The notes under the pieces: generated by a model
The model's database searches: none
What the model was told of the DNA's origin: nothing
What the model saw: only the letters and a program-made list of their open reading frames with translations
In this document: positions 1,255 to 55,729 of the stretch, piece by piece
Position numbering within the stretch: position 1 is the stretch's first letter
Layout of the letters: the number at the start of each line of letters is the position of its first letter
From: Stegostoma tigrinum
Taxonomy: Eukaryota
Assembly (NCBI RefSeq): GCF_030684315.1
Contig: NC_081387.1
Coordinates: forward strand, 10,684,822 to 10,748,821
DNA length: 64,000 nt
Direction of reading: 5' to 3'
Made by a program: the position numbers and the translations under genes

Positions 1255-1852
1255 ACTGTTCCCTGCTGTTTTGTTTCAGCCAATTACTAATGATCTATCC
1301 CCCTTTAATTTAAACCAGATTCAATAATACTTGCAATACAGCATTCTCTGCTTCACTTGTTCTGCCCGTACAGACCCCTGTTTTTTCAGAGCGGTATCCA
1401 CAGGATTCTCTGTCCTGCCCATTCAGCCCCTTGCTACCTGCAAGGCGGTATCCACAGAACTCTCTGCCCTGCCGTCCAGCCCCTCACTCCCTACGAGGCG
1501 GTATCCACAGGGACTTACTTACACCACGTGGAATTTTATTTCACCCGATCTTTTTCACTTATTTGTCCCTTATCCCACTGCGCAGTTTACTTGAACAGTC
1601 CTCCACGCCTCCTTCAACTTTAAATTACTCCCTGCTGTCTGGATCTTTGGGTCGGAGAGACCATTCGGCAGCTTCCCCACACTTCCGAGTCCCCGAGGAC
1701 CTCCCAAGCGAACAGAATATAGTCCGAATCAGAAGCAGAAATGCTTTTCTTTTGCTTTGGGTGCACCCTTATTCTGTCAGTTTCAGGAGTGTCCCCACCA
1801 GACCGGGAAGCGCCCTGTTACTGTCGCCCCTCTTCAGGTAGCTCTCTGCACG

Positions 1853-1870
1853 ACCCTGCTCATTGCGCAA
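1853..1870 (-). promoter_or_regulatory. Primer-binding site complementary to the tRNA-Ser(UGA) 3' end
   Basis: Plus strand ACCCTGCTCATTGCGCAA vs tRNA-Ser 3' end ACCCTGCTCGCTGCGCCA as recalled (15/18), 3 nt from the LTR terminal CA. Confidence 0.7.
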
Positions 1871-1873
1871 ATT

Positions 1874-2653
1874 TGTAGTGGAGAAACTACCAGGAGACGC
1901 GGAGAATTCTTCGGCAAGTTAAACTTTTATTTGCAAACAAAAGCTGTGACAATCAGAAAATGGTTTCCCGATTGCCCCCGAACCTCGGGCCTCGTTATTT
2001 TTTATACTTTTTAGTTATCACACTTTCTTCAAATTATCAGCATGCCCAATGGTATTAATTAGTAAACAACTTATGTCACTATGCTTAGATCATTTCTATC
2101 TCATGACAGAGAGCCATTGCACCTGCACTTGAAGGTCAGTTAGAGTGGTTAGTACCCCTCTATCTTATCAGGTTACTGCTGTATTCTGAAAGGCGCATTG
2201 TTTACGATCTTTCTTTGCAGCGGCCTGAGGGTTAGTGATTTACGTAGCTCGAGCAGAATTAATAAAGTTCGCAGCCTAGAAGCCATTTTGTTGCTAATTT
2301 GCATCGAGAAGCCATCTTGTGCCTGTATCCAAGTTTCTTATTTATTACTACATCTGCCTGAATGGTCCTTCGCCTCGGGTTGACCCCATTACGTCATGCT
2401 AGTCTTTAGTTCTATGTTACATGCTTTAATTAACCTAATTAAGCTGCCATTAATAGCTAACCTGGGTGTCCTACCTTTGTTTTACACTCCCTTGACCTAT
2501 GCTCAAGCACTTCATTCTGTTAACGTACAGCATTGTATTGATTATTGTAACACTCCATAAATCAGTACATCATCCTGCTGATCACTAAGATTTAACCCTT
2601 TGTCTGCCCCTATAATTTTAATTTCCATCTCTGTCTCGGTTGGATGCTCTTCA
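1874..2653 (-). mobile_element. 5' LTR of the ERV (right boundary approximate)
   Basis: Terminal CA at 1874 next to the PBS. On -, TATAAAA at 2006-2000 and AATAAA at 1931-1926 lie in U3-R-U5 order. Candidate TG start at 2653. Confidence 0.6.
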
Positions 2654-4446
2654 GAGGAATTGATCTGGACTTGAAAGATCAAATGACCTACTTCCACCCT
2701 GTGAGGATTCTATGGAAAGGAGGGCAAACAAATTCAGAGCTCCCCAGATGGAAATAGAGACAGCAGTTAAAATAACGAATAAAAAGTGTGCTGATGGCAA
2801 ATTAATAAGTCCAGTTGAGAACCAAAAGGAATATGAAAGGGCTGGGGGGGAGGTGAAAGATGTTGGAGAATCAAAGAGGGATGATGATAAAAGTCTGGTG
2901 GTCAACATGAAAGGGTGTCTTAGAGTCTTCTGCGGGGATGTCAATATTAACAGGGTGGTGAAATTAGGACTGACCAGGGCCCAAATGTTTTATACACATG
3001 GAGGCAGGAGGCATGACTGATGTGTCAAATGAACATTTTGTATCTTCCTTTATCAAGGGGGTGAAAGTGGCTTTGGGAAGCAGGACAATCTGTCAGTAAA
3101 GAGGTTCAAAATAGATCAGGATGAACTGTTCAATGGAATATTGATTCTTAATGTTGGCACCCTGGCCAGATAAGGTGTATTCAAGGATAGTGAAGGAGAG
3201 TGGAATTTTGCAAGAGCACTCGCCACGATCTTTGAGTTTTCCCTCAATTTGGGAGACACCCAAAAATTGGAAAAGTGCACCCTTATTCAAATAATCCTGG
3301 AAGACTGAGGCGTACAGTTATAAAAAAAATCAGTTTAAAGTTAGCATGGGGGAAGCTTGTAGAAACAATTATTCATAGCCAGACAAATAAAATGGCTGGT
3401 AGACAGCCAATGCACAACCAATGTGGAGTTCACAGCCAGTCAGACAGCATCTATAGGGAGTGATGTCAAGTTAATGTTCTGAGTCTAAATGACTCTTCAT
3501 CAGACCTGGAGTGAAGTGCAGAGGGGACAGCATTTATGCTACAGTTTGGGGAGGGAGAGTGTTGGGGTTGTGGAGTGTAGAGTGCTGGCTGAGAAAAGAT
3601 GTTGACAGTTCGGATTAAGTGGTCGGAATGTGAGAACGACAGTACAATAGTGTATCTAGTGCCAGACTTGAAAAAACAGATAACCCCTGTGAGGCGAAGG
3701 GAGAGGAGAGAGGATGTGGTGATTGAGAATGTAACAACCTAAAAGAAAGGGAAGGAATGGTTCACAAATTCGTACATTCTGATTGCTGACTCTGAACTAT
3801 CTGCCAGCACCCCACTCCCGCTACCCCCACCCCAACACCCAAACTGTAGCATAAATGCTGTCCCCTCCACACTCCACTTAGCTCTGATGGAATCGTCCAG
3901 ACTCGAAGCATTAGCTTGCTCTCTCTTCATGGATGCTGGCTGACCCACAGTGATCTCCAGTGCTGGTTGTTTTCAGTACAAGCCAGCATCTGCCACAATT
4001 TTCTCCCAGAATAAAAGTGGCTTATTTTTAGGGAAGGATTCTAAAGGGGAAATCATCTTTGACTAACACGCAAGAGTTTTGTTTTGAAGAGGTATCAGGT
4101 CGAAGAATTTTTGTTATTAGTTGTGGGGAGGAATGCAAGGGGAAGGTTCAGTCCTTTAAATACCCTTAACAGAAGTGGTGTGGAGTTGCAGATTTAGAAA
4201 CAATCTAGCCTGCTATTGGTAAGCCATTTGAATATGCACAATTGATGCCTTTGCACTCCTTCAAATTCATCCAGTGGATTGCTCGCACTCAGTTCGATTA
4301 TTCAGCACTGAGTTTATTTGACAACTTGCTGCATTCATGCATCCTTTAAAAATAGCGTATTTTAAAGATAGCCACCCTTGTAAAGCATGTTTCAATTAGT
4401 GAGGTCTGAATGTCCTTGTGTATCGGTATCCAGGCACAGTAAGTAA

Positions 4447-4948
4447 TTATTTCAGAATCCTCTCCCCATCACCCTTTTCTGATGAAGGGTCTAGGCCCAA
4501 AACGTCAACTTTTGTGCTTCCTACCTACTAACCTCATCCCACCCCCTTGACCTGTCTGTCCTCCCCGGACTGACCTATCCCTTCCCTACCTCCCCACCCA
4601 TACTCTCCCCTCCACCTATCTTCTCCCCTATCCATCTTCAGTCCACCTCCCCCTCTCTCCCTATTTATTTCAGAATCCGCTCCCCAGTCCCCTTTTCTGA
4701 TGAAGGGTCTAGGCCCGAAACGTCAGCTTTTGTGCTCCTCTGATGCTGCTTGGCCTTGTGTATCAGTATCCAGGTACAGTAAGTAACTATTTCAGAATCC
4801 GCTCCCCATTCCCCTTTTCTGATGAAGGGTCTAGGCCCGAAACATCAGCTTTTGTGCTCCTCAGATGCTGCTAGGCCTGCTGTCTTCATCCAGCTCCACA
4901 CTTTGCTATCTTGGATTCTCCAGCATCTGCAGTTCCCATTATCTCTGT
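4447..4948 (+). mobile_element. Tandem Penelope-like pseudo-LTR fragments with three hammerhead-like cores
   Basis: CTGATGAAGGGTCTAGGCCC(G/A)AAAC at 4479, 4697 and 4819, with a pyrimidine-rich tract matching the GIY-YIG-linked copy at 31290-31880. Confidence 0.75.
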
Positions 4949-5009
4949 GAAGTACATTGGATCTAGATTGATTCACAAGAGGAGACAGAGTCACCACCAA
5001 AATAAAGCG

Positions 5010-5321
5010 AATGGAATCCCTACAGTGTGGTAACAGGCCCTTTCACCCAACAAGTCCAAATAAACTATCAGAAGAGCACCGCCCCCATCCTTTCCCAGAA
5101 CCCCACATTTCCCAAAGCGGACACACCTAACCCGCACATCCCTGAACGGGATGGGCAATTTAGCATGGCCAATCCACCTACCCTGCACATCTTTGGACTG
5201 TGGGAGGAAACCAGAGCACCCGGAGGAAACCCACGCAGACAGTTGCCCGAGGGTGGAATCAAACTTAAGTCCTGGCACTCTGAGGCAGCAGTGCTAACCA
5301 CTGAGCCACTGTGCCACCCCT
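5010..5321 (-). mobile_element. HE1-type tRNA-derived SINE
   Basis: On -: GGGTGGCACAGTGGCTCAGTGGTTAGCACTGCTGCCTC (A-box), body TCCTCCCACAGTCCAAAGATGTGCAGG, CR1-like tail. Confidence 0.85.
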
Positions 5322-5675
5322 AAAATAAAGTGGCAGTTCTGTTTAAGAATAGGATAAGGACATTTTTCTTTGCTTTGTGAATCTTTCGAACTCTCTTTCT
5401 TGCAGGTAGCCTTTCTGAGACACAAAATGGTGGTGGGGTCAGTTTATTAGGGATAGATGGGATAACAGAGTCATCAGGTTGGCAGAATTGGATGGCCGGG
5501 TCGGTCCAAAGGGCCGAGTGGCCTAATTCTGTCCCCGTTTTGTATGTTTATATACTCCTATAGAAATGATTGATGCTACTGCTTGCTTCCAATTGTTGAA
5601 TGATCTGACGCAGGCTATTAGGTGAGGTCTCACAGTCCTATGGGATATGATTCCCTGCATCTATCTCACTAACAG

Positions 5676-5951
5676 GGATCCACTGGTTTCAGCTAATGAC
5701 TGGCTGTGACCTCCGGGAGGATGGCACCACAACTGGATTCTCTCAGTTTGGCTGGGACGGGCAAGATTACATGAAATTTGACAAAGATCACCAAGACTGG
5801 GTCACTACAGTACGGTGGGGAGAGAGCACGAAGAAATGGTGGGAGGACATCAGGGCGTGGAATAATCAGCACTGGAAGTATTACCTGGAGGAGGAGTGCA
5901 TTCACTGGCTGAACACCTACCTGGATTACGGACAGCAGATGCTGAGTACCA
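5676..5951 (+). CDS. MHC class I (non-classical) heavy chain, alpha2-domain exon
   Basis: Acceptor ctaacAG at 5675 and donor GTAAGT at 5952; 276 bp, phase 1/1. Translates (G)IHWFQLMTGCDLREDG...GWDGQDYMKFD...STKKWWE...YYLEEECIHWLNTYLDYG with C101/C164, DGxDY, T143, W147, Y159 and Y171 (HLA numbering). Confidence 0.95.
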
Positions 5952-6278
5952 GTAAGTGAGGGGTTAGGGACACTGAGAGTCGGTGAGCGAGGAAGGTGGT
6001 TGGGGGGAGTGAGAATCATTGAGTGAGGGACGGGGGAGTGACAGTAGGGGAGGGATTGTTGGTGACTGAGCAGGGTGTGAGAATCGGTGAGTGGCAGCCA
6101 AATTGAGGGGGGTGGAAGTGAGTGCCGGTGAGTGGGCGGTGACAAGAGTGTGGGTAAGTGGGGGGGATAATGGAGAAGAGTTGGTGAGCGAGAGTGGGGA
6201 GCGGGTGTGCAGGTCAGTGGGGGTGGGGGGGGGGTGGGTGGGGAGCGAGTGCCGGTCAGTGAGCAGGGTGTAGGTTGG

Positions 6279-7266
6279 TGCTACAAATCGGAGGGTAAAC
6301 CCCCTCCCCCAGAGAACTAAAACTGAAACACCCAAAGAGGAGCAGCTCGTGCCATAATCTGTAAAGGGAGTGTGAGAAGTCATGTAACCTGCTTCTCAGC
6401 AACTTCTAGTGCCTAAATAAAATAAATCCCTGTCACTCGCTTTAAAATTAACAAGTAACAGTTTATTTATCTAACTCTAACAATGAACAAATTAACAAAA
6501 CTATTAACAAATGGAATAAATCCTTTCTAACAACCAACTGTTCCTGAATAAAGCAAGATTCAAATGGTATTCTGTTCTTGTAAATATGATACTCAGTTAT
6601 ATATGAAAAGAAATTTAGTCTCTCGAAACAATAGCCAGGTTACAGGTCTTTTGGAATGTTCTGTGCCTTTTCCCTTGATTCTTTTGTCAGGAATGCTTTC
6701 TCTGTTGATTCTTCTGTCAGGAATATTAACAAGTTGTGCTGTTGGTAACATTATTATTTAGGTGGTGCTTTCCCTAAGACACAGAGGAGGCTTTGGGAGC
6801 CAATAATTCTCTCTCGAGCATTGAGGACCGTTAGCTTTGGCGGATGGCAGCTAGTTTTGGGATTTTTGTCTGACTGCCTCCTTTTTATACCCTTAATGGC
6901 ATATCAATATTTCTTCCAGTTGGATTGGTTCTATGTTCTCAAATCCATCAGACATAAATTTAATTGATTTTTGGCACCGAAGTATCTGGTTCAAATTGAT
7001 TTGGCTAAATTCAAAAGCCTGTTGTCTTGGTTAGCTTGGCCTGCTAACAGTACGGCCTTTTGATACAAATGTTTCAAGCTTGGGTGCTCTCTGTGTATTT
7101 GCAAATTTTCGCGCTGCTGTTCAAAGTTGTCCATTTTAAATCTCTAAGCAAATGTTCCTTAAAGGGGCTGCATAATGCTTCCACTCCTCCACCCCAGCAT
7201 CTTACAAATACCAAATTCTATCTTCCTGCCTCTTAATCCACAAGTACTCTGTCCAACTTTGCAACA
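6279..7266 (-). mobile_element. Solo LTR of a Gypsy-type retrotransposon in the MHC alpha2-alpha3 intron
   Basis: TG...CA termini; reverse-complement similarity to the LTR at 59711-60960. Flanks GTTGG and GTCAG are consistent with a CpG-decayed GTCGG target-site duplication. Confidence 0.75.
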
Positions 7267-23114: not shown

Positions 23115-24001
23115 TCAAATAACTGTTGTGACAGTATGTTTCACCTTGCTCTTCAATTGTTCGCTGAATTTGGACTGAGTCACCATATAAATAAATGCGT
23201 TGGTGCAACAATTTAAACTGAGCAGCATAACTGCAACTTCTGCAAAGGTATGCATAGAATCATTGTAATATTCAGGGCTAATTCCGGTAATGACATAATA
23301 TAAGAAATCTATTACATGCATAAGCCACAGGAGAATGAAGCTGCCAGATATGGTGAAGAGTAGAATCATAGACTTTCTTCTATTCTCCATCTCTGGGTCA
23401 CTGCAGTTCTGTCCCTTGCTCTGATTCCTCAGTGCTTTCCGGACTTGACTTGTCACTATAATGTACTTGACTGTCAGGGCATTGAGCAACAGAATTAAAG
23501 CATATGGGATTAATGGGGTTAAGACCTTATCAAACCAGTCAAATGCCATCCATGCAGGATCAGTGAAGTAGCTTGGCTTTAAACTGCAGAACCAGGGAAT
23601 ATTGTCAATTATCACTTCATGTTCAATTAATAAGTAGAGGGGAATGCTTTTTAAGCAGAGAAGAATGCAGGTAGTTGTCTGAATGAGGGCTGCAATTCTT
23701 CCAGTGCAATATTTTGTTTTCAGCTTCTGACAACAAATGGCCACAAATCGATCGAAGGAGAAAGTGACGGTCAGCCAGACAGAACATTCTGAGGATGCAG
23801 AAATCAGGACAAAATTAATACTGCACACAGGGGTGATGTTGAGGAATGATTCTGGGGAATAATGTGAATTAATTCTCCTTAGTATAAATGCAGTGATAAC
23901 GACCAGTAAATCTGCTGCTGCCATGGCTATCAGGTAGCGAGTGGTGCAGGTGGACAGTCCACACTTTCTTCGTGACAAGATCACAATTGCCAGTAGATTA
24001 A
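23115..24001 (-). CDS. GPR139/GPR142-like class A GPCR, gene A, exon 2 (probable G-protein coupled receptor 139-like; intact, 316 aa with exon 1)
   Basis: Acceptor ttcctggcAG at 24002. VNLLAIVILSRRKCGLS...YLIAMAAADLL...SVWLTVTFSFDRFVAIC...ILLFTISGSFILLW...LNCCTNAFIY gives a 7TM pattern with GPR139-like motifs and an open frame to TGA at 23117-23115. Confidence 0.92.
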
Positions 24002-25019
24002 CTGCCAGGAAGACAAAGGAAAACAAACTGTAAATTATTGATCAACCATTCTCTATGTTGAACCTAGGGAGTGAGGACAAATTTCTATTCCAAAAAACAG
24101 TAGCTTTGGAAGGATAGAGAATAGATATTTTCGGAAAATAAATGCAAGCATGACTTGAACTTGCCTAAATCAATGTTTAGAGTTTGGAAAAGGGCAGACA
24201 AATAACTATGCCTAAAAATTGGATGACAATTTATCATTTGGATAACATATAAAAATCTATGAGTTTACCTGAACTATATCATTTATTCTGTCTGTCATTG
24301 TTTTCCATGTTTCATCACAAATCCCAGACAAAGATACCAGGGATTATCAACTGGAAATGACTCCTGAAGCACCCTAGAAGCAGACACTCAGAAACTGGAT
24401 CATGTATCAAATCGAATAATCTATTTTTGGACATTGTGGGGTTGTAGGGGAACAATTGGGTGTTAGACAGGAGATATATGCAGCTCATTGCTCAGGAGTG
24501 TAGGTTAAGAAATGATACAAAGGACAAATGACAGACACTTAAATCATTTAATCAAGTTAAAAGATAAAGATGATCTACAAATTCAAATGATTAAACTAAA
24601 CAAAATAAAACATTCAATAAACAGACATAAAAATGTAGCAGTGTAGTAGAAATAGTTAATGGTGGATCGGCAGTTAATGACAGAGAGGTGACAAACATAA
24701 TAAATAATTGTTTGTTTGATCTTATTCTGTACCAGACTACTGAAGAAACATGGTCATGTTAAACAAAAAAAAAGCAAAATGAGCAATGAGGTAAGGATAT
24801 TTTGAATAAAAATATCATGTTTGAGAATGTGCACCAGAGTGGATGAATGAGTATAATGAGGGAAAACGGAAGTAGGGGACAAGTGGCAGAATGAATTTTC
24901 GTCTAGCATGGAGACAGAAAACAGAGCGTCTAGTCAAGAATAATTATTCCAAAGGTGAGAAGCTGTGTTTGTGAGGATCGGGGATGGCATCACATCTTTT
25001 CACAAATCGCATTAATTGT

Positions 25020-26392: not shown

Positions 26393-26462
26393 AATATATA
26401 TATCATTGAGATTGAATAGGACATTCGGAAAAAAAAGAGCAATTTTCATCCCATTAATTTGC
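26393..26462 (-). promoter_or_regulatory. Putative core promoter of GPCR gene A: TATATATA box plus upstream GCAAATTAATG motif
   Basis: TATA starts at 26402 on -; motif at 26462-26452. The same arrangement occurs in gene B. Confidence 0.5.
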
Positions 26463-45999: not shown

Positions 46000-48308
46000 T
46001 CATCGGAAAATATATCTTGCAATTTGAGAAAAGGGATATTTGACCACACTCTTCAACTGCTCTCTGAATTTAGTTTGGATTATGGCATAAATGCACGTAT
46101 TTGTGCAGCAACTCAGGAGCTGAAGCATGTTTCCTAATCTGCCAACAAAATGAGGTGCAATTGCAGACACTTAACCTGAATACCATAAATGAGCCCACAC
46201 TGAAGATACAATATGTACTGCCCACAAAAATATGAAATTTCCTGAAATTGAAAATAATAAAATAATAGATTTCATTCGGTTCTCAATCTCTGTGTCTCTG
46301 TAGCTCACTGTTTTGCTCTGAGCCCGGAGTCTACTGCGTGCTTTATTGGAGACCAAAATGTGCCTGACAGTAAAACCATTGAGCAGAAGAATCACAATAA
46401 ATGGGAGACATGGAGTTACAGTGCTTTGAAGCAACTCGATTATAATCCGCTGCCATATATCAAAAACATCAAATGTTGTTTGACAAAACCAAGGTAAGTT
46501 CACAAGTAAATACCGGCCTGTGAATGAAAAGTACCACACCGTGTTTTTTTAAAAAGTTCAACACAGTCACAGTTCCAAGAACCACAGCCACAGTTTTCTC
46601 TGTGCAATACTTAGTTTTCAGTCTCTGGTAGCAAATGGCCATAAATCGATCAAACGTGAAAGTGACAGTGAACCACACTGAACAGTCTGTGGCTGCAGAA
46701 ACAAAACATGCGTGGATATTGCACACAGGTAAGGATTTCAAAAAATTAAAGCGTTTCCAATAAACAATAGGAATCTGCCTCAAGATCAGGTCGGTGATAA
46801 GCACGATTAGATCTGCTGCTGCCATGGCCACCAGATAATGACTTACACTTTGGAGAGGCCACACTTTCCCCGTGATAAGATCCCAATCGTCACTGCGTTA
46901 ACTGAAAGGAAGAGAAAAAAATCAGGTATATTAATCACCTGCTCGATATAATGCTATAAGGCTCTCTGATTAATTATAATATCCATGGAAATATATTAAT
47001 AAATCTGTCATATTGTTAACTGCTGTAAACGGGACCTGAATTAAGTAAATTCTCAATTATATCGAAGTGTTTATTTATGGGGATAAAACAAAATGGCTGA
47101 AAAGCATATTATAGATTCAATAAAATGATTGCAGTTCTGACAAATGTTTCCCTGTATTTGCAAAATAAAGAATATCATTTTCATATATAATATAGTGCAG
47201 AAGAGGTAGACTGCAATCTGATGATGCAACATTAAGCTCAATGCTGCCAGCTTAGAGTCGAAGTTAAAATTCATAAAATTCATAAAAAACATAAAATTGC
47301 ATCAAGAGAAAATATTCTCCTTGAAGTCAGATGGAAGAAGAAAATGGACAAATTTCCTGCAGTTCGAAAAGATGCATTATTGAATCAGCAAAATCTTTTT
47401 CATGCATCAAATGTTACGTTCGACTTGCACCGGCTCAGTGGTGGAGGCAGGAGCAGTGCGAACAGGATTAAGGAGAAAGCAGACTTTTATCCAAAATGGA
47501 TGAATATTCTGCAATGCACAGACAGTAAAGGTAATGATACCAATTTTACTAAATTAACTCATCATAACCTTATGTAAATAATGTCACTGATGGAAAACAG
47601 ATTTCAAGTCTTTTTTTTCAATGACGTGAGACATCTGAAGTTCTTCTTCCTGTTGACACGCAGCTATGGGTATGTACATGAAGGAGTGCACACAATAAAA
47701 TACCGAAAAATTACCTACTTCAACAAAATACCATCTTGTATTTTTTTTACAATACGGAGATAAAGTGAACAGCAAATTAGTGCTTCCACGATCTTACGGA
47801 CTCCCTGACCTGTAAAATATTTTGGCGTCATATTACATCAAATCATTGATTGGAAAGGAGTACACGGAAAGTCGAAAGTAAATACTTTTCAAGGTAAATC
47901 ACTTTTATTATGATACCACATTATAGACAGTACGAAAAATCGGTGTGATATCAAGATGCTATCGAATGAGCTGACTTCAGAAACATTAGAGTGCGGCTCT
48001 CGACACACTCTGCACACGCTTGTCTGATCAGAGAATCAAGTATCTGTTTCTTCAGATGGACATATTAACTGGTGAAACGTTGAAAGTGATGATATGCAAT
48101 TCATTCCACTCAAAATACTAAAGCAAGTTCCTCCTGAGAATTATTCGCTAGATCTATTGATGTGACATTGTAACAACAGCAACAGAATGGAATACATTAT
48201 TTAGGAATTCATGTCTGCTTCCAGAAACTTACCAGCAACACCAATAGTACCAAGGAGAGGATAGTAAATCTTTTCTATTTCAAAAATGAAGAAAAATATC
48301 TCGTCCAT
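46000..48308 (-). pseudogene. GPR139-like GPCR gene B pseudogene (exon 1 48308-48233, exon 2 46901-46000)
   Basis: Exon 1 MDEIFFFIFEIEKIYYPLLGTIGVA+G|GTAAGT. Exon 2 VNAVTIGILSRGKCGLSK..YLVAMAAADLI..SVWFTVTFTFDRFMAIC..LLSCCTNTCIYAIIQTKFREQLK..*. Lesions: 1-nt deletion at ~46848 giving an immediate TAA, +1 in the A7 run at 46550-46544, and an in-frame TAA at 46173-46171. Confidence 0.9.
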
Positions 48309-48388: not shown

Positions 48389-48456
48389 TTTATAAATAGA
48401 AGTGGAAATCCCTTTGGTGATTGTGATAAAATCCTTGGAGGCTGGCATTAATTTGC
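48389..48456 (-). promoter_or_regulatory. Putative core promoter of GPCR gene B: TATTTATAAA plus upstream GCAAATTAATG motif
   Basis: TATA at 48398-48389 on -; motif at 48456-48446. Confidence 0.5.
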
Positions 48457-50980: not shown

Positions 50981-53001
50981 GCCAGTTGTGGATTTGCTGG
51001 TGATCTGTCCTCCCCGAGAGATCCAGCTCCAGACCATGCTGCCTCATTTTAGAGAATATCAGACCAAACCTGACAGTCAATCAAATAGGTGGAAGGCAAT
51101 TGATGGAAAGTTTTCAAGAAGGTGGGCCTCAGGGAAGTGGGCATGCTGCCAACAGGCATCAAACAAATATATTCGTTTTGATTTCCACTCAGCAACCTCA
51201 CAGGAAGGAAGTCACTGCTGCGTGGAAATCAACCATCAGAGGCCCAGATCCTTGTTCCACTCATTGATACTTCTCAGCAATGGCTGCAGACATTTCATGA
51301 TGTTAAAGCTGTGGGGAAAGAATGTGGGCAGTCGAGGAAGGTTTATCAACAGGAGAAGGGAGATGTCATCTAATATTTATTTTTCGCCCCCACCACTGAC
51401 GGAAAGTCACTCATCCTGTCACCAAATGCCTTTTGAATTGTGAAGCCCAGAGAATAGTACCTGAAGTCACACCGGGTTCAATTCTTATATTCCCCACGTC
51501 GCTATACAAGTGTAGATGACTGAGGATTCAAACACCTATCACCCACCCAATAAAAACCTCACGCACACCCCCAAACCCTGCCGTTTCTGAACACAACATG
51601 GAATGAGGTAGATCAATCTGACCAAGGCCAATTTCTGGGAATTGACATCCCCACACGCTCTGGATTCTGATTCCAGGAGGTGCACTCTATTCATGAGTTC
51701 TCAGTTTTGTGTCCCTGATCATTTCTGAGCAGGAGTGTTTGAGCCAGTAGCTTCACAGTCATGTGGGATTTCTCTCTTTTGTTTCGAAGCACAAATAGAC
51801 AAAACATGTTGATTCCTCAGCTAATGTATTTTACTTGCAACTAACATCAAAGTACACGATGTTCGAATAACAGTTATGTTTCAACTACAAGCCAATATCA
51901 TCGAAAAGTTTGTATTATCGACATTTATGTTCCTATCTGGATCATAAACGTGTATTTGTTGCCATATCTTTAATACATTCTGCATTTTGTTGCTTTGCTC
52001 TCTCCACTGTGAAGCTGTCTTACACTTTAGGTGTAGTGGAGCTGTGTTTTCCTAATCTGAATATTATTTGTTCAGAAGGAACTGCTGTATTCTATGAATC
52101 GGGATTCATTCAAATTTTGGTGGGGAAATATCTCTGCTATTGACTTAATCCATCAACTCAACACACAGGGAACAAAAACAAGCTTGATAGCTGGCACAAC
52201 ACAATAAAATGTCAGGAACATGGACGAGCATTTGTCACAGTGTCCAAGTTTCATTCCATACCTTCAGGCTCTTTGTGACAATCAGAGCATTTCCAATATT
52301 CCACGGATTCTAACTGCACACATTTTACACAAATATGGTGGATTATTATCAATAACTGAATGCTTAATTCGTTGGTTTTATGTTCTTATTCAAGTGAGGA
52401 TTATTTTAATGCTAATGAAGATGAGTAATTCATTTGAGGAGCCAAACAGATGCATTGACATCAGGCTAATCCCACATGACTGTGAACAATTAGGAGAGCT
52501 CTTCTTTTAATTTCCAAAGACTCTTTCTGAAATAAGGAATTAGCTATTATCAAAATACCTAAAAGACATTTGCTATAAACATTCAAAGAGTGTACGATGA
52601 TGAGAATGTCATGTCATTTAATGATTTGAAGATAGTGGATCTGTTCTGTGACACTTTAGGAAGGCAGTGATAGCTTGTTAATGAGCACAATATCATCAAA
52701 TGAAATATTCTCACAGAACAACTTTATGCTGTATTCGATGATGCGTAAATAATAGGTAAGTTTACCATCTCATTCCTTCAAAAATCTACTCGAATAAGTA
52801 GCATCAATTTTACCAACAGGAAGCATACGAATCAGTTGTTATGTTTAAAACGTCATTCAGATCTTACATATAAGTGTCAACTTGATACATAATCGGGCAC
52901 AATTAAACTAAAATCCTGCTGTACATTTGAATATAAATGAAGGAAAATCAAGTCAACGATATTTCTGAAAAGTGCACAAAATTATACTCGTAGCTTTTCT
53001 T

Positions 53002-54417
53002 TCATTTTGTTGTATCGATAATTTTGTACTTGCATGAGAGAAGATTCTTGAAGGTTTTCTTGAAGATGGCATTGCACAGAGCATAACAGACTGGGTTGAT
53101 GGTGCTGTTGATGTAACAGAGCCAATATCCAATGGTCCACATTGTGTCAGGGATACAAATTGAGCAGAAAGTGCTCAACACCATCATGACATTGTATGGG
53201 GTTCCACTAATGATGTATGCAAGGATGATAGCTAGTATGGTTCTGGTTACCTGATGCTCTCGAGATTTAGATACTTTCTTCGATGTATTCCTGTTTATGT
53301 TAACTAAATTATGGCCAGTTCTTATCATTGGGACATTCCTTTTATTCCTGTTGATATTTGGGAGTATTCCTGCTGGGTTGCCACAGTCCACATCTTTTTC
53401 AAATTTACAAATTCCCTTCATTGAGAAGCAATTGGAGTTGTCAATCCGAAAATAATTTTGTCCCACATAAACGCTTGTTTTGCCTTGGATTGCTTCTTCC
53501 TGATTCTCATTCGCAGGCAATGCATTGAGAGAAGTTGAATCATTATTGAGCTCATCTTGATGACTTTGGTCATAGCCATCACCTGTCAATTGATCGGGTA
53601 TTTTGCCACTTTGCGCTTGATCATGCAGAGGCACAACAGGAATTGTTGGAATTCTGTTATTATTTGTTTTTGCTATTTTTTCTTTCACTGGGCTAGAAGA
53701 AACTGTGGAATTACTTGTTTCAGGTGCTGTTTTATCCTGTTTAATTCGGCATTTGCTTGCACGAGATATGAATGTGTACAGAGTCACCATGATTATAGCA
53801 GGGAGATAGAAAGAAGCTGTACCGATACTGAGAGTGACAGCAGGATTTGAGAAGAATTGTACATAACACTCACCTTCGTTAACTGTCCGCTCCCCTACGA
53901 TGTACTGCCAGAAGATAATGGGCGGCGCCCACAGGATAAATGGCAATCCCCAAGCAGCTGCAATCATCATCAAGACCATCTTCGGTCTTTCCTTCACAGG
54001 GTAGTGAACCGGCTTTGTCACGCAGAAGTAGCGATCAAGGCTGATCATGAGGAGGTTCAAGGAAGAGGCATAGCTGACAACATAATCTACAGCAAGCCAG
54101 AAATCACATGCCACTGGACCCAGCGGCCAGTATCCAACCACAATGTAAACGGTGTATAAGTTCATAGAGAATGCACCAATAATGAAATCCGCACAGGCTA
54201 AGCTGAAAATAATGTAGTTATTAATAGTTCGCAAATGTCTGTTGACTTTGATAGATACTAGGATCAGAATGTTTCCAACAATGGTCACCAAACTTAGAGA
54301 TCCTGCTGCAATAACAATGAAGACCATTCCCACTGTATTACAGGAACTCCCTCCTGCAACATCAAACAATCCATTAGTGCTGCTGTGAGATTCATTTGTC
54401 TCCATTACATTGGTCAT
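53002..54417 (-). CDS. CHRM2: Muscarinic acetylcholine receptor M2-like (divergent paralog), single coding exon, 471 aa
   Basis: GSLSLVTIVGNIL..SIKVNRHL..FSLACAD..GYWPLGPVACDFWLAVDYVVS..DRYFCVTKP..ECYVQFFSN..VTRTILAI..WTIGYWLCYINSTINP.CYALCNA.FKKTFK. ICL3 is M2-like (NNN, NDSTS). The acceptor tttcatgcatttAG at 54449 places the first usable ATG at 54417. Confidence 0.93.
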   Translation of the reverse strand: MTNVMETNESHSSTNGLFDVAGGSSCNTVGMVFIVIAAGSLSLVTIVGNILILVSIKVNRHLRTINNYIIFSLACADFIIGAFSMNLYTVYIVVGYWPLGPVACDFWLAVDYVVSYASSLNLLMISLDRYFCVTKPVHYPVKERPKMVLMMIAAAWGLPFILWAPPIIFWQYIVGERTVNEGECYVQFFSNPAVTLSIGTASFYLPAIIMVTLYTFISRASKCRIKQDKTAPETSNSTVSSSPVKEKIAKTNNNRIPTIPVVPLHDQAQSGKIPDQLTGDGYDQSHQDELNNDSTSLNALPANENQEEAIQGKTSVYVGQNYFRIDNSNCFSMKGICKFEKDVDCGNPAGILPNINRNKRNVPMIRTGHNLVNINRNTSKKVSKSREHQVTRTILAIILAYIISGTPYNVMMVLSTFCSICIPDTMWTIGYWLCYINSTINPVCYALCNAIFKKTFKNLLSCKYKIIDTTK

Positions 54418-55729
54418 CCTTTTGTCGTGATGCACAGATATCAAATCCCTAAATGCATGAAAGAAAGGAAAGATTGAAATAAATTGTAACTTCACAGGGC
54501 TGTGTTTATGGCTGTTCTGAAATTTCTAACATCAAGAGGACCAAAAGTAGTCTCAACATATTAACTTCATTCTCTTCTCAAAGCAACACACTATTTGGTT
54601 TGAAATTGTCTCGGAAATCACTATTTTAAAAATTATCTAACACAGTCAAATACTTTTATTGAACTAAGTGAAGATGTGCTTGGTAACAGAGCAAACGTCT
54701 AGCCCAGAACCAGTCTGAAATAACCCCAAGCAGGCAGTGTGCTGTCATCCTGAATTGACATGTACCCAATACACGATGGTGTTCGAGCTCACTGAGACCC
54801 AGCTTCTCGGGTGAACAGAACCCCACTCTCCTGTTTATATCCATCATCCAGGGCTCCTGCATCCTGCAAGTTGGTCTCCTGGCCGGGCATTGCGGAGGCT
54901 CAGCACCGTGGGGAAGTCTCTCAGCGGCCTTTGGTCCAATGTGGCCTCAGCGTGAACTTCCATCCTCCAGGTGATTACAGAGGAGTCTCCCGGCCTTGTC
55001 AGCCTCCAGGTGAATCCCAGCGCAGCCTGGAGTCAAGGCTCAGTGGGGACTGGAAGCTCACTGGGAGTGTGGGCTGGGTTTGAAGGACTCTTTTGCTGAA
55101 CATTTTTAATTCTCTCTCTTTTTAAAAAAATATTCCTCTGATCTCTAATATTGGATTTTTTATTTCTTTATTTTCCTGCCATGCCACCAACACCCCACCC
55201 CCACCCCCGCGACCCCCGAAACTTGTGCTGAAGAATCTGTAACTATTTACCTTTTTACGTCAGATGGCCCTATAAGAGGCGATTTGTAAACTTTTTGCTG
55301 TACACTTTTGAGTACATGTTGCAATAAAGCTAAATCTAATTCAAGATTAGACCAGTCCCAAACTGGGATCTGACATTCCATGATATCAACCTCGTTGACT
55401 CCATTAAAATCACGACATCCTTCCCACTCTGCCTCCTGGGTTGTGTGATACTTTCGTCCCAGTCCCGGATCCTCTGACTCTGCCTCAGATACGGGCTAGT
55501 GTGCACCAGACCATGGACTATGCTTTGCGCTGGGAGCACATCATGAAAATTCATCCTTTTCCTCAAGTGGTGATGGTGTTGAAGCTCTGTCACCTGTTGC
55601 GTCCCATCCAGGACTCGGAGGATCCTTATGACGCGAGGTGGAAGGGGGTATCCACGGGCTCTCACAAACTCGCCGGATATTCTGAAAGGGCAGGGATGTT
55701 GCTGCCCCGTTTATGAGGTTGCAGCTTTC

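Follow-up and report, generated by a model that had tools for sequence, protein, structure and literature searches.

The open reading frame at 53002-54417 on the (-) strand is a genuine, intact gene of the zebra shark and is not the canonical CHRM2. Its product is a muscarinic M2-like protein in which the tryptophan toggle switch of TM6 is replaced by glycine. With slightly more confidence than doubt, we infer from its sequence an M2-duplicate Gi/o receptor with an altered switch, whose cationic ligand would be other than, or additional to, acetylcholine (ACh); the ligand, the coupling and the change in activation all belong to this inference. Muscarinic receptors are regarded as evolutionarily frozen. 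The reference study of their evolution, whose sample did not include sharks and rays, found that none of its vertebrates had a duplicate beyond those from whole-genome duplication (PMC6298421). A shark and ray expansion of the otherwise single-copy M2 receptor is apparently undescribed: no description was found in the literature searched, nor any mention in the catshark olfactory literature and supplement searched. In these genes, nature has in effect mutagenised the scaffold of a major drug target, which shows which parts of aminergic activation are replaceable while the cation cage stays.

The earlier note described the frame as open over 471 codons, and the list of open reading frames and the translation bear this out, from ATG to TAA. 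All 471 residues are identical to P0136, the RefSeq protein XP_048375725.2 of Stegostoma tigrinum, annotated as "muscarinic acetylcholine receptor M2-like". By tblastn, the window, i.e., the whole 64-kb stretch of DNA analysed, has no other M2-like copy. The top PDB match is human M2 (phmmer, 6u1n_R, E 8e-159), and Pfam 7tm_1 (PF00001) matches residues 48-445 (E 1.6e-58). An AF2 model has seven helices and H8, with a mean pLDDT of 53 and values of 62-87 in the TM blocks. The RefSeq model divides the gene as follows:

53002-54417, (-) strand: main coding exon, 471 codons and TAA, with seven TM helices and an ICL3 of 175 residues
54449-54792, (-) strand: intron predicted by the RefSeq model, 344 bases, GT..AG, from the genomic sequence compared with the N-terminus of P0136
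54793-54890, (-) strand: upstream coding exon of the RefSeq model (MPGQET...AGSQ; ATG at 54890)

With the first 60 residues of P0136 as tblastn query, the upstream exon is recovered at 33 of 33 identical residues, and the split codon CA/G across the predicted intron gives the Q that precedes DLISVHHDKR-M. This exon sits within a very high-copy repeat (word depth 1600-6400 in bin 54810-54926, roughly 20-180 in neighbouring bins). A promoter motif was found in the window upstream of two GPR139-like genes and not of the M2-like gene, and the 64-kb window shows no enrichment in O/E-like sites.

Identity with human M2 is about 55% over the whole protein and about 73% within the TM helices. The protein has in common with vertebrate M2 (CHRM2; reference structures 3UON, 4MQS, 6OIK, and 6U1N; shark M2a example, Stegostoma XP_048405539) an essentially single-exon core, a long ICL3, the D3.32/tyrosine-lid cage, N6.52, VTxxIL, DRY, and NPxxY, and differs from it by W6.48G, N3.37Y, V3.40S, F5.40L, T5.42I, A5.43G, A5.46S, and F6.44Y. 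In the phmmer alignment to human M2 (6u1n_R), TM6 reads AYIISGTPYN for AFIITWAPYN, TM3 reads SYASSL for SNASVM, and TM5 reads TLSIGTASF for TFGTAIAAF. This alignment and the codon read-out recover every substitution that had been listed previously, W6.48G (GGA) included. The codons concerned are:

53191-53196, (-) strand: Y6.51 and N6.52, retained; the former belongs to the tyrosine lid, the latter is the Asn that binds the ester
53203-53205, (-) strand: Gly405 (G6.48), codon GGA; the Trp toggle switch in canonical receptors
53206-53208, (-) strand: S6.47, codon AGT; the segment from Y6.44 to S6.47 is 53206-53217
53215-53217, (-) strand: Y6.44, codon TAC; 6.44 is the F of the PIF motif
53812-53832, (-) strand: TM5 pocket segment, with L5.40, S5.41, I5.42, G5.43, T5.44, A5.45, and S5.46
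53812-53814, (-) strand: S5.46, codon TCT
53821-53823, (-) strand: G5.43, codon GGT
53824-53826, (-) strand: I5.42, codon ATC
54061-54087, (-) strand: TM3 pocket segment, with D3.32, Y3.37, and S3.40
54061-54063, (-) strand: S3.40, codon TCC
54070-54072, (-) strand: Y3.37, codon TAT
54085-54087, (-) strand: D3.32, codon GAT, retained

Further changes, absent from the earlier list, are F5.40L, G5.41S, I5.44T, T6.47S, S4.53P, and V6.55M. The CWxP toggle motif is missing, the corresponding stretch of TM6 being S-G-T-P. In the M2 and M3 crystal structures, the ACh pocket is made up of D3.32, Y3.33, S3.36, W4.57, T5.39, T5.42, A5.43, A5.46, W6.48, Y6.51, N6.52, Y7.39, C7.42, and Y7.43. Ten of these 14 residues are kept and four are altered (T5.42I, A5.43G, A5.46S, and W6.48G), as are the adjacent positions 3.37 and 3.40. 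The residues said to be kept (D3.32, Y3.33, W4.57, Y6.51, N6.52, Y7.39, and Y7.43) are indeed there, and so is the Gi/o motif VTxxIL at the ICL3/TM6 junction, which reads VTRTIL in the alignment (QVTRTILAIILA). The protein also retains D2.50 of the Na+ site, DRY, NPxxY, and the C3.25-ECL2 disulfide cysteines. In ICL2 the hydrophobic anchor is kept as Val (L137V), but R143E, T144R, and T145P are found.

Among 77 non-elasmobranch M2/M4 cluster representatives, the ten listed positions are invariant with the exception of one F5.40C, and 6.48 is W in 77/77. The view that the changes cluster in the pocket is not borne out as stated. M2/M4/M2a have 228 (nearly) invariant positions, and the protein differs at 56 of them, also outside the pocket; there is, nonetheless, a bias toward TM3-6 (26/76 changed, vs 6/49 in TM1, 2, and 7; Fisher p 0.006).

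The gene had been proposed to be a duplicated receptor and not the sole or syntenic CHRM2, and the genomic evidence agrees. Canonical shark M2a is a separate gene whose proteins from 12 shark species cluster at 90% identity or more, and it lies on another chromosome in every species checked: in Stegostoma, M2a (P0126/P0134) is on a contig of 63.46 Mb and the M2-like gene on one of 31.95 Mb, and the two are on different chromosome-sized contigs in six other shark species too. M2a is single and nearly frozen, whereas the M2-like gene is multi-copy and fast-evolving. Missing from the earlier note is that the gene is one of about seven close copies in the zebra shark, within a wider expansion; the number of additional M2-derived genes per species of shark or ray ranges from several to at least ten. 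In a tree with a single M4 (eel) as outgroup, all elasmobranch M2 and M2-like proteins group together (support 99) as the sister of bony-vertebrate M2. Inside the broader M2-like expansion of sharks and rays, where W6.48 disappeared on at least five occasions, lies a carpet-shark clade with G or A at 6.48 (SH-aLRT 100; stem of 0.34 changes per site). It includes seven proteins of the zebra shark and one each of the whale shark, two bamboo sharks, and the epaulette shark. Accessions of the carpet-shark copies are XP_048375725/726/728/729, XP_059495588/589, XP_048376214, XP_020375018, XP_043533789, XP_060706658, and XP_072405796. The zebra-shark copies are all on one contig, and the word tandem would rest for them only on this and on consecutive RefSeq accession numbers. 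Position 6.48 is G in nine and A in one of the ten full-length clade members aligned. Positions 3.40, 6.44, 6.48, and 6.52 vary between copies; at 6.44, Y is found only in the three youngest zebra-shark copies, with S or F in the other members. Of the 56 changes at positions that are otherwise invariant, 15 are shared in identical form by the ten members. The changes became fixed before the divergence of the five sampled carpet-shark species. The free tree puts the duplication after the Heterodontus split, but this timing is uncertain, because an AU test does not reject all shark M2a as one clade, i.e., a duplication before the shark crown (p 0.08).

In the explanation that we favour, the gene goes back to a duplication of shark M2. 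Along the stem branch leading to the carpet-shark (Orectolobiformes) clade, W6.48 was replaced by Gly, and the lower orthosteric pocket and the PIF layer were rebuilt (N3.37Y, V3.40F and then S, F5.40L, T5.42I, A5.43G, and A5.46S). The cation cage (D3.32, Y3.33, Y6.51, Y7.39, Y7.43, and W4.57) was preserved, with N6.52, D2.50, DRY, NPxxY, and VTxxIL, and the gene later multiplied to at least seven proteins in the zebra shark. Such a receptor may well retain Gi/o coupling and hold the head group of a charged amine or quaternary ammonium compound in the conserved cage, a ligand class predicted from the retained residues only. Because the floor that binds the tail of the ligand is new, the preferred ligand is probably not ACh, or ACh is perhaps a weak agonist. 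Activation would bypass W6.48, and its set point is probably different, as in MRGPR receptors with G or S at 6.48.

The M2-like gene could instead be a subfunctionalised M2 copy that is still an ACh receptor, with affinity, efficacy, or kinetics shifted in a particular tissue, which we regard as unlikely. The protein is nested inside the M2 clade, retains the Gi motif and a long M2-type ICL3, and belongs to a clade in which nine of ten members keep the ester-binding N6.52 and the whole head-group cage. Yet the protein is altered at six positions of the pocket or switch at which the 77 M2/M4 representatives show no variation, and in the m1/m3 mutagenesis literature substitutions of T5.42 and W6.48 reportedly reduce ACh affinity and efficacy. 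The conserved M2a, moreover, is already available for the cholinergic role, and seven copies differing at 3.40, 6.44, and 6.52 are hard to reconcile with a single ligand.

Less probable again is that these are relaxed duplicates becoming pseudogenes, with changes that reflect decay and a frame that survives through youth and the slow evolution of elasmobranch DNA. Between zebra shark and whale shark, M2a diverges by 1.3% in the TM helices and the M2-like protein by 9.6% (16.6% in ICL3), a TM rate about seven times higher over the same species split, and relaxed constraint would give that too. Divergence from the bamboo shark is 19% in TM and 38% in ICL3. In both comparisons the TM helices have diverged less than ICL3, which speaks for constraint, but the TM/ICL3 ratio is about 0.5-0.6 for M2-like vs 0.07-0.28 for M2a. 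Judging from its sequence, the zebra-shark array includes decaying members, such as the sister copy P0001, in which DRY has become DHY, with L3.43H and the loss of a tryptophan in ECL1 (W97C). Four public runs were found to contain M2-like sequence, none of them on record as RNA, and their contigs behave as genomic. The three youngest zebra-shark copies differ by 11-16 residues, and a frame free of stops ever since the last duplication has a probability of about 0.8, so that a recent relaxation is possible. However, the M2-like frame has been held open far longer than neutrality allows. Its lineage has accumulated about 102 amino-acid changes since the crown of the clade without a stop (neutral P about 0.004-0.012), and with the clade stem included the neutral P falls to about 1e-6 to 1e-5. 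G6.48 and about 15 other stem changes are fixed in five species and two carpet-shark lineages, and the folding and coupling motifs are intact in the XP_048375725.2 copy. With the exception of the one decaying copy, the ten clade members show no variation in the cage residues, DRY, NPxxY, D2.50, or the C3.25-ECL2 cysteines. Between the TM7 of this copy and that of any other member compared, at most one of the 20 residues differs (0-1). A caveat is that RefSeq protein lists are biased toward intact copies. The coding variants in the reads (5 synonymous to 7 non-synonymous, mostly in ICL3) are few and mix alleles with paralogs.

A constitutively active, ligand-independent receptor (or a purely modulatory or decoy one), with TM6 freed by the loss of W6.48 and of the PIF and hydrophobic-lock residues and expression level setting the output, is very unlikely. 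Young copies vary in the activation layer (3.40, 3.43, 6.40, 6.44, 6.47, and 6.48) and not in the cage, and G-T-P at 6.48-6.50 should loosen the TM6 kink; without a ligand, though, one would expect drift at D3.32 and at the four tyrosines of the cage, which are in fact invariant in 10/10 clade members, and the inactive-state stabilisers D2.50 and DRY are retained.

The substitutions are neither chance nor base-calling errors. Reads were available as contigs from four public runs of two samples in one study. The X2 contig over 52831-53271 spans the G6.48 codon with 0 differences, and X1 (53858-54095) and X2 (53858-54099) cover the TM3 pocket codons, again with 0 differences. The X3 contig (53474-54099) has six differences, none at the TM5 pocket codons according to the variant table. 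The same residue states occur in nine other proteins of a clade that covers five species, so that the earlier dismissal of a base-call error holds on both counts. Many contigs at 90-95% identity on the locus reveal close paralogs that could be mis-joined, but an assembly artefact or a collapsed chimera of paralogs has practically no chance of being correct, given that error-free contigs of the four runs span the key codons, that an identical protein is already in RefSeq, and, most weightily since the runs may derive from the assembled individual, that the same substitutions are found in four other species.

The loss of the toggle tryptophan has a functional precedent in the MRGPR family. MRGPRX1 is a functional receptor with G6.48 (PMC10286997), and MrgD, which carries S6.48, shows a high basal level of Gi activity (PMC9287403), an observation that also speaks for a constitutive receptor. 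Because of this precedent, the new ligand and altered basal activity suggested by the earlier note are plausible by analogy. CWxP is common in class A and not obligatory, since MRGPRs lack it; in these receptors TM6 collapses toward TM3. Both the shark genes and the MRGPRs (MRGPRX1/X2/X4 and MrgD) are class A receptors with lineage-specific expansion and no toggle Trp; the aromatic TM3 residue against 6.48, Gi/Gq signalling, many cationic agonists, and high basal activity of MRGPRs may be counted as further likenesses. MRGPRs are nonetheless an unrelated branch of class A, with a shallow surface pocket far from 6.48 and no D3.32 cage, with altered DRY and Na+ sites, and with a TM4-TM5 disulfide, whereas the zebra-shark receptor has a deep aminergic cage, DRY, D2.50, and canonical TM3-ECL2 cysteines. 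The parallel is thus best taken as one of mechanism and not of kinship.

TAARs, which keep W6.48, derive from HTR4, whereas the M2-like genes derive from CHRM2. They arose when a class A receptor of the neurotransmitter type was duplicated into a small, fast-evolving, lineage-expanded set with varied pockets that retained the amine-binding Asp (PMC8032801). The olfactory adenosine receptor A2c is a comparable case of such a conversion (PMC8890504, PMC8462279). The M2-like set is likewise small, fast-evolving, and lineage-expanded, with a varied pocket; for TAARs, olfactory expression has been shown. Clustered lineage-specific copy number, fast evolution, and variable pocket residues are traits of chemosensory families, and the OR, TAAR, and V1R sets of cartilaginous fishes are tiny (PMC10116579; PMC8032801). 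The M2-like genes are a concrete candidate family for shark sensory biology. That they form an unrecognised CHRM2-derived chemosensory family for water-borne or prey-derived quaternary ammonium compounds and amines is speculative and, on present evidence, improbable; candidate ligands would be choline esters, betaines, and TMA/TMAO-type molecules. If true, such a family would make up for the very small number of OR and TAAR genes in these fishes. Its most derived branch would then be the G6.48 clade of carpet sharks, which has expanded in the zebra shark, an eater of molluscs.

One part of the earlier interpretation is not supported as stated, namely, that the large-to-small change at 6.48 is compensated by the small-to-large change at 3.37. 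Y3.37 accompanies G5.43 and S5.46, also in stingray paralogs that retain W6.48. For Y3.37 vs G5.43 or S5.46, an independent-pairs test could draw on no more than 2-4 pairs and lacked power; the co-occurrence of Y3.37 with G5.43/S5.46 in rays and in carpet sharks is anecdotal. At the base of the clade, the partner of W6.48G appears to be V3.40F, later replaced by S or C.

The receptor gene is an ATG-to-TAA frame of 471 codons (ORF list and translation), and comparison across the whole 64 kb turned up no other M2-like sequence. Among the cluster members compared, it is identical (471/471) to the database protein P0136, the Stegostoma tigrinum RefSeq protein XP_048375725.2, which carries 43 more N-terminal residues, the 514-residue isoform being the database's own model.

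The receptor frame and its predicted upstream parts
53002-54417, minus strand: M2-like receptor frame
54449-54792, minus strand: predicted GT..AG intron after the upstream exon, read from the sequence
54793-54890, minus strand: predicted upstream exon, 33 of the 43 extra residues, by match to the RefSeq model N-terminus

The predicted exon sits within a repeat with a word depth tens of times that of its flanks. The N-terminal extension, which four zebra-shark paralog models share, may therefore be a prediction error or a repeat that was exonised. The very high-copy part (54810-54926), which overlaps this 5′ coding exon, has a summed word depth of 1600-6400 in all four runs, versus roughly 20-180 in neighbouring bins.

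Pfam assigns the window protein to the class A 7TM receptors (E 1.6e-58), and among all PDB chains human M2 is the best match (6u1n_R, E 8e-159), followed by M4 and then M1, M3, and M5. Ballesteros-Weinstein numbers, placed through alignment with the koala M2 protein, show as kept D2.50, C3.25, D3.32, Y3.33, S3.36, DRY, W4.50, W4.57, T5.39, F5.47, P5.50, P6.50, Y6.51, N6.52, W7.35, Y7.39, C7.42, Y7.43, and NPxxY, and as changed N3.37Y, V3.40S, S4.53P, F5.40L, G5.41S, T5.42I, A5.43G, I5.44T, A5.46S, F6.44Y, T6.47S, W6.48G, and V6.55M. Each substitution listed in the earlier note is visible in the alignment with human M2, and recomputed coordinates give the same 6.48 codon, GGA (53203-53205), two changes from TGG. 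Positions 3.32, 3.37, 3.40, 5.42, 5.43, 5.46, 6.44, 6.48, and 6.52 do not vary among 77 non-elasmobranch M2/M4 cluster representatives.

The gene had been proposed to be a duplicate and not the sole or syntenic CHRM2, and this holds. The canonical receptor of sharks, M2a, forms a single cluster at ≥90% identity (Stegostoma, Rhincodon, two Chiloscyllium species, Hemiscyllium, two Scyliorhinus species, Carcharodon, Cetorhinus, Mustelus, Heterodontus, Heptranchias, and Pristiophorus), with the canonical residue at all positions tabulated. In each species listing both, M2a and M2-like genes lie on separate chromosome-sized contigs, which rules out the window gene as CHRM2 itself.

Examples of contigs carrying M2a and M2-like genes
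Stegostoma: M2a 63.46 Mb, M2-like 31.95 Mb
Rhincodon: M2a 58.8 Mb, M2-like 25.1 Mb
C. plagiosum: M2a 70.0 Mb, M2-like 35.0 Mb
Cetorhinus: M2a 80.6 Mb, M2-like 96.3 Mb

In trees of 54 and 71 proteins (LG+C20 PMSF, SH-aLRT support), every elasmobranch M2 or M2-like protein falls in one clade (support 99), whose sister is bony-vertebrate M2. Ray paralogs cluster with ray M2a. Those of galeomorph sharks come together in a single clade (98), and in the free tree its sister is the M2a of the carpet, mackerel, and ground sharks. Grouping all shark M2a in one clade is not rejected by the AU test (p 0.08), which makes any dating of the duplication from the free tree tentative. The clade of the window protein has a support of 100 and sits on a long stem of 0.34 changes per site. 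It contains seven zebra-shark proteins plus single proteins from whale shark, C. plagiosum, C. punctatum, and Hemiscyllium.

Zebra-shark clade members and their identity to the window protein
P0136 (window protein): 100%
P0135: 97.5%
P0137: 96.6%
P0001: 91.5%
P0002: 87.9%
P0138: 86.4%
P0004 (partial): 87.7% over 454 aligned residues

A word search, in which clade members would be expected to rank between the 72% and 60% matches, found none in annotated lamniform, carcharhiniform, heterodontiform, squalomorph, or batoid genomes; many of its matches are shark and ray proteins named "M2-like". All clade members have Y3.37, P4.53, L5.40, I/V5.42, G5.43, S5.46, and M6.55, and of the ten full-length members aligned nine have Gly at 6.48 and one Ala (the partial P0004 also has Gly).

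Across 91 M2/M4/M2a sequences, 228 positions show no variation or a single exception, and the window protein has changed at 56 of them, more often in TM3-TM6 (26/76) than in TM1, TM2, and TM7 (6/49; Fisher p 0.006), and 15 of these changes are identical across all ten clade members. F3.40 occurs with F6.44 or S6.44 in the bamboo/epaulette shark branch and in two zebra-shark copies, whereas in the other members 3.40 is S or C and 6.44 is S or Y; parsimony on this residue table suggests V3.40F as the change that accompanied W6.48G. The compensation between 6.48 and 3.37 put forward in the earlier note is probably wrong, since Y3.37 goes with G5.43 and S5.46, including in stingray paralogs that retain W6.48. 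This trio may be a coupled structural unit, its two origins being too few for statistics. It arose separately in the stingray M2-like proteins P0016 (Hemitrygon) and P0084 (Hypanus), both with W6.48. Across the whole tree W6.48 was lost at least five times, each time in M2-like paralogs. Further independent losses (P0009, P0011, P0075, and P0113) come from two basking-shark copies (W6.48F) and from one skate and one catshark copy (both W6.48L); D3.32G and P5.50L also occur in P0009.

The alignments establish that the window receptor keeps the residues that folding, the holding of a cationic head group, and Gi/o contact would need. The head group would be held by D3.32 beneath a lid of Y3.33, Y6.51, Y7.39, and Y7.43, and Gi/o contacted through the VTRTIL motif, with the residues under and beside the ligand tail and the W6.48/PIF relay replaced. 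On balance, we favour, at somewhat better than even odds, a Gi/o receptor whose cationic ligand is not acetylcholine, or not acetylcholine alone, and whose activation set point has shifted. The cage is invariant in 10/10 clade members while the activation layer varies, which argues that the deep site is still in use; had it been abandoned, as in MRGPRs, the cage would be expected to drift. With the same cage, a low-affinity acetylcholine subtype is conceivable, though we consider it unlikely.

That these are relaxed copies in decay is a doubtful alternative. By protein-level proxies, the window protein differs from whale shark by 9.6% in TM helices versus 16.6% in ICL3, and from C. plagiosum by 19% versus 38%. 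The clade's TM helices evolve at ~7 times the rate of M2a across the same split (M2a divergence 1.3% and 4.6%, respectively), and TM7 shows 0-1 differences in 20 residues in every within-clade comparison. With a stop-to-missense ratio of 0.043-0.053, taken from the codons of the window gene itself, neutral evolution would have added 4-5 stops to the ~102 amino-acid changes of the window lineage since the clade crown (P of none 0.004-0.012); with the stem included, P is about 1e-6 to 1e-5, and the interval since the last duplication is too short for this test to judge. One zebra-shark paralog outside the window, P0001 (XP_048375728.2), has an open frame with DRY>DHY, L3.43H, ECL1 WPLG W>C, V58D, and N6.52Y, and is probably a decaying copy that has lost function; the window copy has none of the lesions DHY, L3.43H, ECL1 W>C, and N6.52Y.

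The toggle Trp is likewise absent from MRGPRX1, which has G6.48 (PMC10286997), and from MrgD, which has S6.48 and high basal Gi activity (PMC9287403), so class A receptors are able to signal without it. Their deep site is abandoned, whereas the carpet-shark cage is invariant, and a constitutive, ligand-independent receptor seems to us quite improbable.

An artefact is practically out of the question, as the substitutions recur in clade members of other carpet-shark species and are thus real and fixed. One run search gave four public runs containing the locus, from two samples of one study, none recorded as RNA. Over 52002-55501, their contigs show zero differences at key codons (X2 53858-54099 and 52831-53271, X1 53858-54095), and those of the X3 contig 53474-54099 are confined to ICL3 positions. 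These runs may derive from the assembled individual, so the cross-species evidence weighs more.

As far as the literature searched shows, the gene has an automatic-pipeline annotation and no description, and we found there no report of additional muscarinic genes in cartilaginous fishes. According to the reference paper on how mAChRs evolved, no vertebrate that it analysed has a duplicate of non-tetraploidisation origin (PMC6298421). OR, TAAR, and V1R genes are very scarce in cartilaginous fishes (PMC10116579, PMC8032801). A family of amine-type receptors that is clustered and evolves fast is therefore worth testing for chemoreceptor function, a role for which the M2-like family is a long-shot candidate.

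Two GPR139-like genes in the window place the M2-like gene among unrelated orphan GPCR genes.

GPR139-like genes
23115-24026, minus strand: intact orphan class A GPCR gene, 303 aa (Pfam 7tm_1 E 5e-23; best PDB match GPR139, E 4e-10)
46021-46917, minus strand: second copy, matching in three pieces and two reading frames, thus probably a frameshifted pseudogene

The motif GCAAATTAATG is missing upstream of the M2-like gene and is weak alone, with 5 matches at ≤1 mismatch versus 2.1 expected by chance. Exact copies lie on the minus strand at 26452-26462, 2.4 kb upstream of the intact GPR139-like gene, and at 48446-48456, 1.5 kb upstream of the second copy.
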